Position numbers and translations under genes: made by a program
Notes under the pieces: model-generated
Seen by the model: the letters and a program-made list of their open reading frames with translations, nothing else
Told to the model about the DNA's origin: nothing
The model's database searches: none
Source: Zancudomyces culisetae HAW-14-8
Taxonomy: Eukaryota > Fungi > Kickxellomycota
Length of the DNA: 64,000 bases
NCBI GenBank assembly: GCA_052426225.1
Contig: JBNJNM010000011.1
Location: 1,674,001 to 1,738,000, forward strand
Direction of reading: 5' to 3'
Shown here: positions 30,571-35,797 of the stretch, one piece after another
How the letters are laid out: the number at the start of each line of letters is the position of its first letter
Position numbering within the stretch: position 1 is the stretch's first letter

Positions 30571-33136
30571 ATGTATGAAGAATACGACGAAAGTTGCTGT
30601 GCGATTGAGCGAGAAGTTCGCAAACGAGTGGTCATAATGGAGAAAATGGCCAAGGAACGGCAACAGGAAGAACAAGAACGTGAACAAGCTGGTGAATATG
30701 GATCCCCCAACCACAACTATAACGGCAACCATGACGAGCATCCAGGTTGGGATTTGCAACAGGCACATTTGGCTATTTCTATCCGTAGTGTTGAAAAGAT
30801 TGTGGCAAACGGATCCACGTTTGTTACCTATAGAATTGAATTTGGTGTAAGTACTCTGTTGTATTATCCTATTTCTCTTTTCTTTTCTTCTTTCCTCTCC
30901 CTTCTCTCTCTTTGTTTTTTTTTGATGAGGGAGGGGTGTATTTTGCGGAAACAGTAATCTTAATTGTTTTGTTTTATAGAGATACGAAGTAAAGAGAAGG
31001 TATTCAGAATTCGAATCGCTACGTAAAGTGCTCTGTAGAATATACCCAACTCTGTTGGTACCAGTGTTACCAGAAAAGCATACTATAGGTATTGTATTAT
31101 TTTAGTCTAAATTAGTTAAACCGAGATATGCTATAAATGGATACTGTAATAATATCTGTATAATTTATGCCTACATATAGTTCAATATGCTACAGGAAGG
31201 AGTAAAATGGTAGAGGATAAGGGCGTTGTGGAAAAGAGAAAGAGAATGCTGGGTAGGTTCTTGAGTAGGATTGCAGAACATCCAATACTGAGCAGCGAGC
31301 ACATATTTCATCGGTTTTTGGAAAATGGTGTTGCATGGGTAAGATACAAAAAAAAAATAGAGAGAGAAAGAGAGAGAGAGATCTTGTATAGTGCTAATTG
31401 CATTATTTTGATTATATTGTTTATTAACTAAAATATTCAATAAGAACAAGAAACAAAACAAAACAAAACAATACTTTACTTGATAAATAGAATGAGGTAT
31501 TGAACTCACCATTAATTCTAAGCTTGCCAGATAATCCATTATATTCGTCACCATCCAAGGGAGTAGGGTCGTCTGTGGCAGCAGATCCTGCTCAAGCAGT
31601 TACGGGTGGGCTGAATGCACTACCCAAAATTGCAGCGGTAAATAAATTTGCGGCAGATGTACCAATACCCAATGCGCTGGTTCCATTGGCCAACCAGGAG
31701 GTGCGATGGGTGGCGTGTAAACTCTTTACAAACAAATTTATGAATATTTGGTCGACCAAGATTGAACCTACTCAAAAAAAATTGAATAAGCGATTTGAAG
31801 GTAAGGTTAAAAAAAAAAGAAAGAAAAAAGGGGAGAGGGGGAGGGGGAAGGGGAAGGGGAAGGCAAATATAGATAGCATAGTTGTTTTATAGATGTTGAC
31901 AAGTGATATTGTAAAATGAAAATAGAACTGGCAGATGGTTATACAGAGCTTGGTGGACTATTAAATGGTATTAGCCTTGAAGAGGGGGGAGATATATCAC
32001 GAGGAATAGAGTATGCAGGACAAGCTGTGGATGGGATGTATACGGCAATGAACCAAATGAAAACAGACATTGAAGGAGAGTACATGGAGTACGTGCACGA
32101 GTACGCATTGTTTGGAACAGCGGTGAATCAGGTATTGGGGTACCGAACGATAAAGAACATACAACTAGAAAAGACGATAGAAAAACTAAAGACAAAAAAG
32201 GGCGAGTTGGAAAGTCTTTTGGCAGAGGAAAAGGAGTCGAGGCGCGAAAACGATCAAGGCAAGTACAGGGATGATGACAGATCTGAGTATACAGTAGGAT
32301 CACCAATGGTTGAGGAGCAGACTCAATCCGATATTGAAAGCGAGCCTGAAATACCAGAGGAAGGCAGAGTCATAAGCAGGATCAGCAGCGAGTATCCTGT
32401 CGCCTCACATCGAAAATCGATGGATAGTGTTGACAATATCGATGAAATTATGTCACAATTCCATCTCGAACAGTCGGCAATGTGGAGTGAGGGAACTCCA
32501 CGGGCACTTCCACAACAGTACAATCCAAGGTCAGATAATAAGATGACTAGGAAAGCGCGATCAAGCAACTATAACGTTTCTGCAACAACAACAACAACAA
32601 CGAAAACAACAACAACGAAAACGAAAACAGCTAATGCTCGACAAAATGGTACTACAACAACAGGAACAACAACAGGAACAACAAGACCAAATTTAGTGGC
32701 ACGACGTACAATATCGTCGCACCCGATGAAAGGTACACAATCCGAACCGACACCTGGGAAACGCAGGGATAGTTTAGAAAGAACGACCGGCAACGAATCA
32801 CTAATTACACCAGTAAAATCACTGTTGAGCAACTCGATACTAAACCGATTTGGGTTTTCACTGGGCCGACAAACGACGATGAATGAACAAGAAAGACATG
32901 CACGTATTGAGGAGATAACGGCAAAGATTACAGAGTACGAACGAGTGTATGAGATGTTGCGAGATGATTTGGCGATTATTGATGAGAGTACGCAGGAGGA
33001 TTTGGATAGGTATCAATTGAGTAAAGTTCGAGATTTCAAGTACATGTTATTGTGTTTATCGAAGGAACATATTCATTGTAATGCAGTTTCGTTGGATGGA
33101 TGGAAAGTTACATTGAATTATTTAAATTCTTTATGA
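30571..33136 (+). CDS. PX-BAR sorting nexin, Snx41/Atg20 family, 5 exons (30571-30846, 30980-31088, 31181-31338, 31491-31800, 31926-33136)
   Basis: PX motifs [51 protein letters not shown] and FHRFLE, followed by BAR-like helices with a low-complexity insert. Confidence 0.88.
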
Positions 33137-33226: not shown

Positions 33227-35797
33227 TTAAAAACTTTTATCATAGTATTTAAACATAGAAAAACTAGATGATCTCTTTGGCTTTATAGTGTTGGTCTCCA
33301 AACCCAAATCGGTATGATCCTTATTGGAAATAGTATTTGTATTTTTAATTGTTGGGTTTGAAAGATGGTCGTCACTATACAAGTCGGCGGGGTTGTGAGT
33401 TTGGATGTTGTTTAGGTTTGGAATTTCATCTTGCAAATAAAACATTCCAGTTTTATTATTACTATTATTACTATTGTTGTTGTTGTTGTTGTTGGGATTA
33501 TTTAGATTGATATTTTCAGTTGGATTCATTCGCTTAGTATTCCGGAGTCTCATACTTGGCAGTTGATATATTTCATTATAATCATCATTATAATCATCAT
33601 CATCTCGTTGAAGCTTATTCTCGACTCTTTGCAAGTTATGAATAATACTTTTTACCTGATTTGTTAGCATCTCCTTGTCCAGCACCAATTGGTTTATCTT
33701 TAACATACTTGTTTTGTTTTCATTTAGCGCTTCACCAAGTTGTTGCTTGTATTCATTTTTCGACATTTCCAACGCTTTATTCAGATACTTTAGTCCCTCA
33801 AATTCCCCTTTAAGCCGATTATTCTCCACTATTTGCTCCTTTTCGCGCAGTTTTACCATCTCTATATTCGTGGAAAGTGTGGAGTTCTCTGTCTTTAACC
33901 TATTAATCTCTCCAATATGCTGCTCCTCGCATAGTTTTGAATGACCAGCCAACAACTCCTGCATATTTTTCAGTGCCTGCTCCTGATCCGCCACTTTCTT
34001 ATCCAACATTTCCCTCTCAAACCTTGACTGCTTATTATTCACTACCTTATTATACGACGTTAGCAATGAATTGTACATGTTTTTAAGCATTTGAAACTCG
34101 CGCTTCAGTTCCTGTATATAATCTCTGTATCCTTCGTTTTCTTTTTTCAACTCTGTCACTTTTCCTACACTTATCGATTTCGTTAACTCTTCCAGCTCTC
34201 CAACTCTTGTTGTTAGTCGTCCAATTAACTCGCTCTCTTTGTCCAACTTACTCGCTCCAACTCCCTCTTCTTGCTTGGGCATTGCTACGCCTTTGCTGTC
34301 TTGTTTCAATGTTTGTTCAGCTAGCTTAACGCGCTCATATTTCAGTTGCTCGTCAACTTGTCGATACAAACTCTGAAGGTTACTAAGCTCCTGTTTTGTC
34401 ACTTGCAGTTCGCTATCTAGTGTCTTGTTCTTTTCTCTCAACTCAAACTCAACTCGTGTCTGCCCAGCCTCTAAATAAACATTCTTGATTTGCATCATCA
34501 CTGTTCGTATCTCTTTCAACTCCTTTTTGATATTGTTTATCTCTTCACTTTCTCCCGTATAATACATCTTTTCTTTAATCATTCTCTCCAAGCTTTGTGT
34601 CAGTGTCAATATTCTAAACTCCATGTTCTTCACCAACAAATTCACGTTCTCTTTAATTTCTTGGAAACTAGGTTGTATATTATCCATACTCGTATAAGTA
34701 CTCTCTACCACATTGTTTTCACCCTTTCCACTGCCGCCATCAGCAACTACTGTACCACCAAACGACCCTTTTTTCCCCTCTCCACCCCCACTTTCCTTAG
34801 CCAAATCCCTCTTCAGATTCTCTATTTGCTCTCTACATTCTGTCAACTTTCTTCTCAAAGTATCTTTTTCATCTTCATATGCTGCTGCTATCTCCTTTTT
34901 TTCTTTCTCTACATCATCCGCATACTCCTGAACATACTCTAACTGGTCATGGAGTCGTTTCTCCCTAGCTTCCACTGTTTCTTGACTAGATCCACCACCA
35001 CCACCAGCCGCATATTTTTTGTTTTTTGCTTCATCTCTTCTTATTTGGTTATTCAGGCTTAATATCTCAATATCTCGCGCCTCTAGCTGTCTCTGGTTTA
35101 ACTCTATTTCATTAACAAAATCCGTATGCTTGGCTTTCAACACCTCTACCTCCTCCTGCAAACTATTTATCCTCGCTTGTTGCACCGTAAGCAAATCAAG
35201 ATTCTTGAACTCCTTTCTACTTTGCTCAACTTTTTTTGTATTTTCGAGTAATCGAAGCATTTCGTTGTTTCCTTCAAGCCATCCTACCTTCAATTTAATC
35301 CTTGTTCCCCCATATTTGATTCTTTCATTAATAACCCTCCGTTCATCCTCCATTTGATTTATACTCGCCTTCAAATTTTCTTTTAACTGTGTGTTGTTGA
35401 TAAGTAATATCTCGCACCTTCTCTCGACCTCTTTGATATCCTTTTTGTGTGTAAATTTCGTCTGTTCTAGATCATGATTCGCTTGCAACACCTGCGCCCG
35501 CAACTGATTGTTATCGTTGCGTAAATTCACCAGGTTTTTTTTGTGTATACTATTTTCAGCCAAAAGTACACCCATTTCTTTTTTAGCTCTGGAATTTTCA
35601 TTTTGTGCATCTTGGAGCTTTTTCATGCTTAATTCCAAGTCTTGTAGTATTGCATTTACCAACGGAACACAGTTTTTTGCTAGTGGATAGCTATATCCCA
35701 AATGTGCCAACTTTGTGCTTAGCACTCTAAATTCTTGATTTCCCATGTCATTTACATTAAAGTACTCGCTTTCCTTGGTTTGTTCTCGGCCAAACAT
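33227..35797 (-). CDS. CEP135: Long coiled-coil protein, CEP135/Bld10 (centriolar cartwheel/pinhead protein) homologue, intronless, 856 aa
   Basis: The N-terminus KLAHLGYSYPLAKNCVPLVNAILQDL...LRNDNNQL aligns without gaps to the CEP135 N-terminus as I recall it (RLDQLGYRQTLTVECLPLVEKLFSDL...LSRENNEL). A second block DLLTVQQARINSLQEEV...LEARDIEILSL matches DLLQVADNRIQELQQEV...IELREREIERL. Confidence 0.78.
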   Translation of the reverse strand: MFGREQTKESEYFNVNDMGNQEFRVLSTKLAHLGYSYPLAKNCVPLVNAILQDLELSMKKLQDAQNENSRAKKEMGVLLAENSIHKKNLVNLRNDNNQLRAQVLQANHDLEQTKFTHKKDIKEVERRCEILLINNTQLKENLKASINQMEDERRVINERIKYGGTRIKLKVGWLEGNNEMLRLLENTKKVEQSRKEFKNLDLLTVQQARINSLQEEVEVLKAKHTDFVNEIELNQRQLEARDIEILSLNNQIRRDEAKNKKYAAGGGGGSSQETVEAREKRLHDQLEYVQEYADDVEKEKKEIAAAYEDEKDTLRRKLTECREQIENLKRDLAKESGGGEGKKGSFGGTVVADGGSGKGENNVVESTYTSMDNIQPSFQEIKENVNLLVKNMEFRILTLTQSLERMIKEKMYYTGESEEINNIKKELKEIRTVMMQIKNVYLEAGQTRVEFELREKNKTLDSELQVTKQELSNLQSLYRQVDEQLKYERVKLAEQTLKQDSKGVAMPKQEEGVGASKLDKESELIGRLTTRVGELEELTKSISVGKVTELKKENEGYRDYIQELKREFQMLKNMYNSLLTSYNKVVNNKQSRFEREMLDKKVADQEQALKNMQELLAGHSKLCEEQHIGEINRLKTENSTLSTNIEMVKLREKEQIVENNRLKGEFEGLKYLNKALEMSKNEYKQQLGEALNENKTSMLKINQLVLDKEMLTNQVKSIIHNLQRVENKLQRDDDDYNDDYNEIYQLPSMRLRNTKRMNPTENINLNNPNNNNNNNSNNSNNKTGMFYLQDEIPNLNNIQTHNPADLYSDDHLSNPTIKNTNTISNKDHTDLGLETNTIKPKRSSSFSMFKYYDKSF

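Follow-up and report, generated by a model that had tools for sequence, protein, structure and literature searches.

A complete CEP135-like gene in a non-flagellated fungus

The window analysed here, a 64,000-nucleotide stretch of the genome of Zancudomyces culisetae (Harpellales, Kickxellomycotina), a non-flagellated mosquito-gut fungus, carries on its reverse strand a complete open reading frame (ORF; 33227–35797) that starts with ATG, contains no internal stop and encodes 856 amino acids followed by a stop codon. The reading of the ORF, its orthologues in Kickxellomycotina and its homology to CEP135 mark it as a short CEP135/Bld10 orthologue. Proteins of this family lie at the proximal centriole wall, as the pinhead or A-link, and bind SAS-6 and CPAP. 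The original prediction of an intact, intronless gene holds for the ORF itself and is consistent with the evidence on introns, the single ORF and its orthologues being colinear between the start and a common C-terminal S-x-S-M motif. The public annotation of an older Z. culisetae assembly contains only a 429-aa fragment (OMH85447.1).

Alignment with the family and with animal CEP135 divides the protein into regions of unequal conservation (all coordinates on the reverse strand). An N-terminal CEP135-homology region (residues 20–309; 34871–35740), delimited by profile–profile alignment with hhalign, shuffle controls and a metazoan-only hidden Markov model (HMM), opens with a head (residues 20–60; 35618–35740) in which family-profile matches to solved structures and an AlphaFold2 model place a short helix, an LGYSYPL loop and the start of a long helix. 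L30, L33, Y35, L46, L51 and D53 of this head are invariant in the N-terminal family alignment, and the region further includes an invariant NNxLR (96–100), a basic HKKDIKEVERR (118–128), RDIEILSLN (241–249) and RLHDQLEYVQE (281–291). The CEP135-like motifs first noticed in the sequence lie where they had been placed (LGY at residues 33–35, PLV at 45–47, DL at 53–54 and NNxL at 96–99), as do two further blocks, DLLTVQQARINSLQEEV (201–217) and RLHDQLEYVQE; profile–profile alignment sets all three blocks in register with CEP135, and the N-terminal alignment, proposed to be gapless over about the first 135 residues, runs without a gap as far as about residue 165.

A variable middle (residues 310–576; 34070–34870), defined by columns of about 350–800 in the family alignment and by sequence reading, consists of coiled-coil stretches interrupted by G-rich linkers; it is weakly conserved even within Harpellales and occupies the place of the long central CEP135 rod. 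There follow a C-terminal CEP135-homology region (residues 577–733; 33599–34069), recognized by hhalign against the metazoan profile and bearing an SK(D/N)EYK block conserved across the family, and an N/D/S/T-rich tail (residues 734–856; 33230–33598), probably disordered to judge from its composition and the C-terminal alignment columns. The N/D-rich character noted for this tail amounts to 28 N and 11 D among 123 residues, and its short terminal S-x-S-M motif is common to the Coemansia and Linderina orthologues.

The AlphaFold2 model of the N-terminal part (mean pLDDT 87.8) shows a helix–loop–long helix arrangement, with helices at 15–32 and 41–162, and Foldseek ranks Tetrahymena CEP135 (PDB 9qzc, chain q) first among its structural matches, but at an E-value of 0.18 this fold match is below significance. 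By alignment, the basic stretch at residues 118–128 falls within the segment that corresponds to the crystallized microtubule-binding coiled coil. A parallel two-stranded, microtubule-binding dimer is a trait of the CEP135 family and is predicted here, where the monomer is modelled as one long helix.

Homology extends to both ends of CEP135

A profile of the family's N-terminal part, compared with the PDB, returned as its top three matches Tetrahymena CEP135 (9qzc_q, E = 7.2e-10), Bld10 (5fcm, 9.6e-7) and human CEP135 (7bji, 3.2e-4), with human CEP135 5fcn in fifth place (E = 0.035); the sequence alone, without a profile, already gave the 5fcm match at E = 1.3. In an hmmsearch of 5.8e9 proteins, the full family profile found a cnidarian CEP135 (P0029, E = 1.8e-23), confirmed as such by its own match to 7bji at 9e-35. 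Against an alignment of 13 metazoan CEP135 proteins (profile of 1288 columns), hhalign paired residues 20–309 with CEP135 3–300 at 99.8% probability (E = 7e-29, 280 columns) and a score of 189.8; 20 heptad-block shuffles scored 26.9 ± 5.8, at most 37.9, and the reversed profile 29.8. The C-terminal part matched metazoan columns 940–1103 with a score of 106.5 (E = 6e-12; 20 heptad-block shuffles, 42.2 ± 6.4, maximum 55.3; reversed profile, 59.9), a weaker match than the N-terminal one because identity is low (13%). Outside these two end regions, hhalign gave no match over shuffle level for CEP135 columns of about 300–940, and some 640 central-rod columns are missing from the Z. culisetae protein.

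Detection did not depend on fungal sequences in the query: among the 137 ORFs of the window, an HMM built from the metazoan alignment alone picked out this ORF as its sole significant match (local hmmsearch, 26.1 bits, E = 7.5e-7 at Z = 10,000; next best, E = 6.1). A whole-genome profile search with the metazoan alignment gave no match, the known ORF included; with a search so insensitive, a second CEP135 paralogue elsewhere in the genome is possible.

Several searches gave results of the kind that a generic coiled-coil protein, resembling CEP135 by compositional chance, would give. Pfam scans of the whole ORF and of its first 150 residues yielded sub-threshold coiled-coil noise only, a language-model look-alike search of the ESM Atlas with the N terminus recovered assorted generic coiled-coil families only, and a word-based homology search with the single protein, its candidates saturated, found no match. 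The Pfam result is uninformative, however, because true CEP135 proteins also give only noise in Pfam, which has no CEP135 model. The profile matches, by contrast, are specific and colinear and begin near the N terminus of both proteins; both end regions score 10 to 28 standard deviations over the heptad-shuffle controls, and PDB, hmmsearch and hhalign comparisons all return CEP135. We rejected chance resemblance as extremely improbable.

The protein thus has the colinear N-terminal head of about 300 residues with the first coiled coils, and the C-terminal rod segment, of a CEP135. It has no long uninterrupted central rod (856 aa versus a typical 1100–1650 aa), a feature typical of the family but not required for membership, as short paralogues and isoforms show. 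The family's habit of occurring together with centrioles and cilia is also broken in this genome, which is the point of interest of the case and no argument against homology. Judged by its sequence, the ORF is shown to be a divergent, shortened CEP135/Bld10 orthologue in a non-flagellated fungus, the identity first proposed for it. Its N-terminal region stands far above coiled-coil background, and of the two outcomes named in advance as contrary, the profiles do match CEP135 and the host is no flagellated fungus with a full cilium kit.

Comparison with characterized CEP135 proteins

With animal CEP135 (human 5fcn and 7bji, and the metazoan alignment), the fungal protein is colinear over CEP135 residues of about 3–300 and alignment columns 940–1103, sharing the G-Y loop, the NN motif, an RD-EI-RL-N block and a Q-x-(D/E)-Y-(L/V)-Q block, at about 19% identity in the aligned part. 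Animal CEP135 measures about 1140–1380 aa, against 856 aa without the central rod here. The shortening noted at first is real; what has been lost is the middle rod, and both CEP135 ends are kept. The N/D-rich tail, and a genome without detectable SAS-6 or cilium genes, also set the fungal case apart. With Chlamydomonas Bld10p, a protein of about 1640 aa that forms the cartwheel spoke tips, it shares the head motif L-x-x-L-G-Y-S-x-P-L ... L-V ... D-L (N-terminal peptide in 5fcm).

The best match among solved structures is Tetrahymena Bld10/CEP135 (Q22AS4; 9qzc chain q), with profile positions 6–124 aligned to chain residues 10–128. In contrast to the fungal setting, this protein sits on the triplet microtubules of a full centriole, together with POC1, TBC1D31 and WRAP73; its N-terminal part of about 360 residues forms the centriolar A-link on the A-microtubule, as a dimeric 'arrowhead' plus coiled coil, and binds WRAP73 (PMC12506977). 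A shorter Tetrahymena paralogue, Q24GZ2, is an example of a short CEP135 that has this same N-terminal part (PMC12506977). Human CEP135-mini, made up of the first 233 residues and a 16-aa tail, shows that an N-terminal part without the long rod occurs naturally; it represses centriole assembly in cells where full-length CEP135 is made as well, and the C-terminal region retained by the fungal protein is missing from it (PMC6724517).

Distribution and selection

Single-sequence searches returned about 18 relatives, nearly all from Kickxellomycotina, with one glomeromycotine and one blastoclad protein. Orthologues occur in Smittium, Spiromyces, Mycoemilia, Coemansia and Linderina; family members range from 545 to 933 aa, and UniRef names two of the orthologues CEP135. 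The N-terminal alignment has nine invariant positions, among them the G-Y and N-N pairs, which coincide with invariant positions of CEP135 itself. Between Coemansia orthologues we counted 23 synonymous and 9–10 non-synonymous differences (ω = 0.13–0.14), using a second Coemansia set because the pair Coemansia sp. RSA 2322 and C. thaxteri was too close for dN/dS (dS = 0.011). The selection test proposed for relatives of the gene thus shows that the close Coemansia copies are under purifying selection. The shortened protein, with its fast-evolving middle and low-complexity tail, could be read as a decaying, functionless relic of a flagellated ancestor on its way to loss, but an intact 856-codon ORF, intact orthologues in at least five kickxellomycete genera, the invariant positions and the low ω make such decay very unlikely.

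The glomeromycotine protein, from the arbuscular-mycorrhizal fungus Funneliformis mosseae, is a clear homologue of the CEP135 N terminus. To our knowledge, no centriole-like ring is known from this species, and retention of CEP135 is not tied to such a ring because this homologue lies outside the group for which a ring is reported.

CEP135 in flagellum-less fungi was missed by two published surveys. A 2018 review described a ring of nine microtubules inside the spindle pole body of Coemansia reversa, called its composition unknown, and reported no SAS-6, CPAP or CEP135 orthologue from the genome of that same fungus (PMC6070874). In a 2026 atlas that covered 184 fungal proteomes, with Z. culisetae, Smittium, Coemansia and Linderina among them, CEP135 still counts as restricted to flagellated fungi (PMC13358043, supplementary table). 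The literature that we searched contained no description of spindle-pole-body ultrastructure in Harpellales, and reported the ring for Coemansia only.

Centriole and cilium genes in the rest of the genome

The Z. culisetae genome encodes one dynein heavy chain, and its tubulins are confined to alpha, two beta and gamma forms; searches for delta and epsilon tubulin brought up neither. Profile searches of the genome gave no match for IFT57 or IFT46, nor for SAS-6_N, Sas6_CC, STIL_N, FOP_dimer or RTTN_N. PLK4 found no support: Plk4_PB1 had no match, and the POLO_box search yielded one gene only, of Plk1/Cdc5 type. These negatives, those for SAS-6, STIL and PLK4 in particular, carry little weight, because the genome search missed the CEP135 ORF too when given the metazoan CEP135 alignment. 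Exon-by-exon searching recovered a CPAP/SAS-4 G-box gene in two exons at C8:~1.634 Mb, whose best PDB matches are CPAP and Sas-4 (E = 1.4e-5), and a CFAP20 orthologue. Of the centriole kit for which a survey had been proposed, one G-box gene is therefore present, and SAS-6, delta and epsilon tubulin and IFT46/IFT57 went undetected at the sensitivity just described.

The CFAP20 orthologue might hint at a hidden flagellated stage, in which a centriole gene would be expected. CFAP20, however, is common in non-flagellated fungi (121 fungal proteins in the 2026 atlas, not flagellate-specific; PMC13358043), GAS8 searches gave only sub-threshold coiled-coil noise, and the single dynein heavy chain and the missing IFT46/IFT57 and delta/epsilon tubulin signals also speak against it. 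We give such a stage almost no credence, and the host is non-flagellated, as had been supposed.

A proposed role at the spindle pole body

We propose that the protein acts at the spindle pole body as a microtubule-binding dimer, probably with the CPAP/SAS-4-type G-box protein of the same genome, a role that we consider somewhat better than an even bet. It would form a parallel coiled-coil dimer there, its N-terminal part binding microtubules and bridging or anchoring them, with the G-box protein probably acting alongside it and with no detectable SAS-6 cartwheel, delta/epsilon tubulin or cilium machinery. With the central rod missing, any connection to a cartwheel has probably been lost, and the function of a rod-less CEP135 may have shifted. 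The protein would be a candidate structural component of a ring of nine singlet microtubules such as that of the C. reversa spindle pole body, and the wall-linker module of the centriole would have outlived both flagellum and cartwheel. Taken as a whole, a short CEP135 orthologue with this putative spindle-pole-body role is the best explanation of the data, with a probability of roughly 60%.

About half as probable is that a true CEP135 homologue has been repurposed as a general scaffold for minus-end anchoring or microtubule organization, with neither a centriole-like ring nor nine-fold structure, for example together with fungal anchoring machinery of the WDR8/WRAP73 type or on arrays of cytoplasmic microtubules. 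WRAP73 has fungal relatives that act at acentriolar spindle pole bodies. Such repurposing would fit the loss of the central rod, the F. mosseae homologue outside the group with a reported ring, the failure to detect SAS-6 and delta and epsilon tubulin, and WRAP73 binding by the Tetrahymena N-terminal part (PMC12506977). Against it, the genome has also kept the CPAP/SAS-4 G-box gene, which elsewhere serves the centriole wall, and conservation of the family is highest in the sole fungal group with a documented nine-microtubule ring (PMC6070874).

The proposed spindle-pole-body role admits a stronger form, which we offer tentatively and regard as rather doubtful: the nine-singlet ring may be a living, cartwheel-less centriole remnant whose wall is held by short CEP135 and the CPAP-type protein, with CEP135, not SAS-6, carrying the nine-fold spacing. 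If so, fungi would have moved from centriole to spindle pole body by way of a stage that survives today and is open to genetic dissection.

Implications

The replacement of the centriole by the spindle pole body in fungi is a long-standing puzzle, for which the Coemansia ring is the only structural intermediate. The failure of earlier surveys to register CEP135 here is a warning that absence calls based on BLAST or orthogroups are unreliable for coiled-coil centriole proteins. A divergent CEP135 across Kickxellomycotina and in at least one glomeromycete, accompanied in Z. culisetae by a CPAP-type G-box gene, supplies named, taggable candidates for ring components and opens the question to tests in fungi that can be cultured. 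As a natural minimal CEP135 that has kept its ends and lost its rod, the protein may also reveal which parts of the family bind or space microtubules without a SAS-6 cartwheel.

An intact reading frame with a CEP135-like N-terminus

Positions 33227–35797 of the window hold, on the minus strand, one open reading frame of 856 codons with an ATG start and no internal stops. The original prediction read its product as the centriolar protein CEP135/Bld10. The motifs it named, LGY (residues 33–35), PLV (45–47), DL (53–54) and NNxL (96–99), all lie where it placed them, as do the blocks DLLTVQQARINSLQEEV (201–217) and RLHDQLEYVQE (281–291). The tail (734–856) is N/D-rich, with 28 N and 11 D among 123 residues. 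The window DNA is eukaryotic, AT-rich (GC about 35%) and poor in introns, with genes for kinases, a UvrD/Srs2-type helicase and a RabGAP, among others. A neighbouring 406-aa frame (31916–33136, plus strand) converges on the CEP135 gene at a stop-to-stop distance of only 90 bp; its middle is Thr-rich and of low complexity, and its C-terminus resembles Vps5/BAR only weakly (19 bits, below the cut-off). Zancudomyces culisetae (Harpellales, Kickxellomycotina) is an obligate gut symbiont whose hosts are mosquito larvae, and this identity bears out the prediction of a non-flagellated organism.

When 1.84 billion representative proteins were searched exhaustively by phmmer with residues 1–340, the family numbered only 18 proteins (E ≤ 0.001), every match beginning at its own N-terminus and colinear with the query. 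OMH85447.1, a 429-aa Z. culisetae fragment, is 100% identical. Relatives come from Smittium (five species), Spiromyces, Mycoemilia, Coemansia (many species) and Linderina and, outside Kickxellomycotina, from Funneliformis mosseae (Glomeromycotina) and the blastoclad Paraphysoderma (one each); lengths are mostly 545–933 aa. The full-length family alignment is invariant at N96, N97, R100, R209, I210, L213, E244, L282, Q285 and Y288, and the N-terminal alignment adds L30, L33, Y35, L46, L51 and D53. The deposited models of Coemansia sp. RSA 2322 (P0008, locus L009; 916 aa) and C. thaxteri (P0024; 918 aa) carry a C-terminal extension of ~300 aa past a ~720-bp intron; because it aligns with no other family member, these models are probably CEP135 fused to a downstream gene.

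Profile evidence for CEP135 identity

Single-sequence searches gave weak evidence. Residues 1–150 gave no significant best match in the PDB, although Chlamydomonas Bld10 (5fcm) already took second place, aligned at the LGY head with E 1.3. Pfam, which lacks a CEP135 model, gave nothing for the frame, and true CEP135 proteins likewise return only coiled-coil noise. A profile of 145 positions of the family N-terminus, searched against all PDB sequences, matched 9qzc chain q best (E 7.2e-10, profile 6–124 against chain residues 10–128), a chain identified as Tetrahymena Bld10/CEP135 (PMC12506977). Next came 5fcm (9.6e-7) and human CEP135 (7bji, 3.2e-4), with human 5fcn fifth (E 0.035). Among 5.8 billion sequences, the full-length profile reached a 1219-aa cnidarian protein (E 1.8e-23) that is unambiguously CEP135, with 7bji among its matches (9.4e-35) and CEP135 relatives numbering about a thousand.

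Profile–profile comparison with 13 metazoan CEP135 sequences aligned residues 20–309 with CEP135 3–300 over 280 columns (probability 99.8%, E 7e-29), placing the three predicted blocks in register with their CEP135 counterparts. This N-terminal part scored 189.8, against 26.9 ± 5.8 (maximum 37.9) for 20 shuffles in 7-column blocks and 29.8 for a reversed profile. That the resemblance arose by chance, a reading for which the single-sequence searches would leave room, is unlikely beside these controls. Reciprocally, a metazoan-only CEP135 HMM scored this frame alone among 137 open frames of the window (26.1 bits; E 7.5e-7 as calculated for a 10,000-protein database). So low a score accounts for the failure of BLAST- and orthogroup-based surveys to find the gene. 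AlphaFold2 with the family alignment predicts a helix (15–32), a loop bearing the LGY motif and a long helix (41–162), at a mean pLDDT of 87.8; Foldseek ranked 9qzc_q first of 350,542 chains, at a non-significant E of 0.18. Searches of the PDB and of sequence databases, profile–profile comparison and the reciprocal HMM all support the predicted identity. At the level of sequence, we regard the profile evidence as decisive for a CEP135/Bld10 homologue, the single-sequence evidence being weak.

Both ends without the rod

Residues 577–733 aligned with columns 940–1103 of the 1288-column CEP135 profile (score 106.5, E 6e-12), against 42.2 ± 6.4 for shuffles (maximum 55.3) and 59.9 for the reversed profile. 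With identity at 13%, we grade this C-terminal homology as probable, not certain. Roughly 640 central profile columns found no match above background in the frame. Matching ends around an unmatched centre point to a CEP135 that has retained both ends and lost its middle rod. The place of the rod is taken by about 270 residues that evolve fast and include G-rich linkers; the N/D-rich tail follows, ending in a short S-x-S-M motif common to the Coemansia and Linderina orthologues.

Evolutionary constraint

Because Zancudomyces has no close sequenced relative for such a test, dN/dS was estimated in Coemansia. A first pair was too close for use (dS 0.011). Three further strains, all from a single Coemansia cluster, have CDS translations identical to the deposited proteins; their two informative pairs differ by 23 synonymous and 9–10 non-synonymous changes (dS 0.058–0.059, dN 0.007–0.008, omega 0.13–0.14), against a neutral expectation of about three non-synonymous changes per synonymous one. 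Moreover, no fewer than five kickxellomycete genera have the frame intact, and positions that are invariant in CEP135 itself are conserved in it. These three observations argue for a functional gene, and a decaying relic is unlikely.

Flagellar and centriolar gene content

We surveyed the Z. culisetae assembly (27.1 Mb, 25 contigs; the window is C11:1674001–1738000) by six-frame searches. One dynein heavy chain was found, inside a 5105-aa open frame. IFT57 and IFT46 gave zero matches, and GAS8 merely sub-threshold coiled-coil noise. Of the four tubulin loci, two encode beta, one alpha and one gamma; neither delta nor epsilon is among them. SAS-6_N, Sas6_CC, STIL_N, Plk4_PB1, FOP_dimer and RTTN_N also gave zero matches, and POLO_box matched only two boxes of Plk1/Cdc5 type in one 1178-aa open frame (C11:4109392–4109895; L007/L008). 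The metazoan CEP135 alignment found no candidate in the whole genome, while the same profile gave 26 bits by plain hmmsearch of the window frames; since the genome search missed the CEP135 frame itself, these centriole-family negatives, SAS-6 included, and its absence calls for other divergent coiled-coil families are weak.

A CPAP/SAS-4-type G-box (Tcp10_C repeats) was detected at ~1.634 Mb on C8, in two adjacent exons (28.2 and 15.1 bits) at the 3′ end of a minus-strand gene (C8:1634045–1634468; L001:1471–1659 and L001:1724–1894). Queried one by one, unjoined, the exons had as best PDB matches only G-box domains of CPAP or Sas-4 (E from 1.4e-5 to 3e-4). After CEP135, this appears to be the second gene for a centriole-wall protein in this non-flagellated fungus. 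Coiled-coil exons on the plus strand (C11:~2369500–2370850; L015:1022–2331), putatively CCDC77-like, were matched by no Pfam model; they would matter, if truly so, since CCDC77, as with CEP135, is reported to be a component of the centriolar A–C linker. A two-exon CFAP20/BUG22 orthologue lies about 142 kb past the window end (C11:1879984–1880498, minus strand; L014:2479–2718 and part of L014:2748–3308), with PF05018 scores of 66.5 and 40.2 bits and PDB matches all to CFAP20 (E 4e-15). Its presence is ordinary and carries little weight, because CFAP20 is common in non-flagellated fungi (PMC13358043). On these six-frame searches, a hidden flagellum, to which a CEP135 gene might otherwise belong, is unlikely.

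A possible linker at the spindle pole body

In Tetrahymena, CEP135 residues ~1–360 assemble as a coiled-coil dimer, arrowhead-shaped at its N-terminus. A major component of the A-link on the A-microtubule, the dimer binds WRAP73 and touches protofilaments A06/A07; for the C-terminal part, a reach as far as the pinhead and cartwheel has been proposed (PMC12506977). Of this protein the fungal one retains precisely the N-terminal module, together with a stretch of the C-terminal rod. We infer that it most likely acts, at a probability of about 55–60%, as a dimeric linker that binds microtubules at the spindle pole body. The CPAP-like protein would be its probable partner, in a structure that would already have lost its cilium, its triplets and its cartwheel; the obvious candidate for such a structure is the ring of nine singlets in Coemansia.

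The main rival is repurposing: CEP135 would now serve as a general scaffold that anchors microtubules, no ring being involved. The F. mosseae relative (CAG8547776.1, P0017; 309-aa model) matched the metazoan profile in hhalign with 98.8% probability (E 6e-17, 29% identity), and is nearer to animal CEP135 than its kickxellomycete counterparts. On this sequence evidence, a non-flagellated arbuscular-mycorrhizal fungus has a clear CEP135 N-terminal homologue, so retention extends beyond Kickxellomycotina. That spread gives repurposing more weight, and we consider it possible rather than probable. The observation itself is confirmed; for the function, a spindle-pole linker is the preferred candidate.

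A 2026 atlas covers 394 flagellar proteins in 184 fungal proteomes, among them those of Z. culisetae, at least five Harpellales, C. reversa, Linderina and Rhizophagus. In its supplementary table CEP135, counted in 16 fungal proteins, is classed as 'flagellated fungi specific' (PMC13358043). Within the literature covered, searches pairing Kickxellomycotina, Zoopagomycota, Coemansia or mycorrhiza with centriole or CEP135 gave no report of such a gene. All family members are labelled hypothetical protein at NCBI, and the sole earlier recognition we found comes from UniRef, where two orthologues (Mycoemilia A0A9W8DRZ4 and Coemansia A0A9W8G6Q9) are named 'Centrosomal protein of 135 kDa'. What appears to be new is a rod-less CEP135 retained in non-flagellated fungi, here in a genome with no detectable SAS-6. 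According to a 2018 review, a cylinder of unknown composition lies within the Coemansia reversa spindle pole body; it has nine microtubules and is 'reminiscent of a centriole' (PMC6070874). With genes now named, this stated question about a centriole-like spindle pole body becomes open to experiment.
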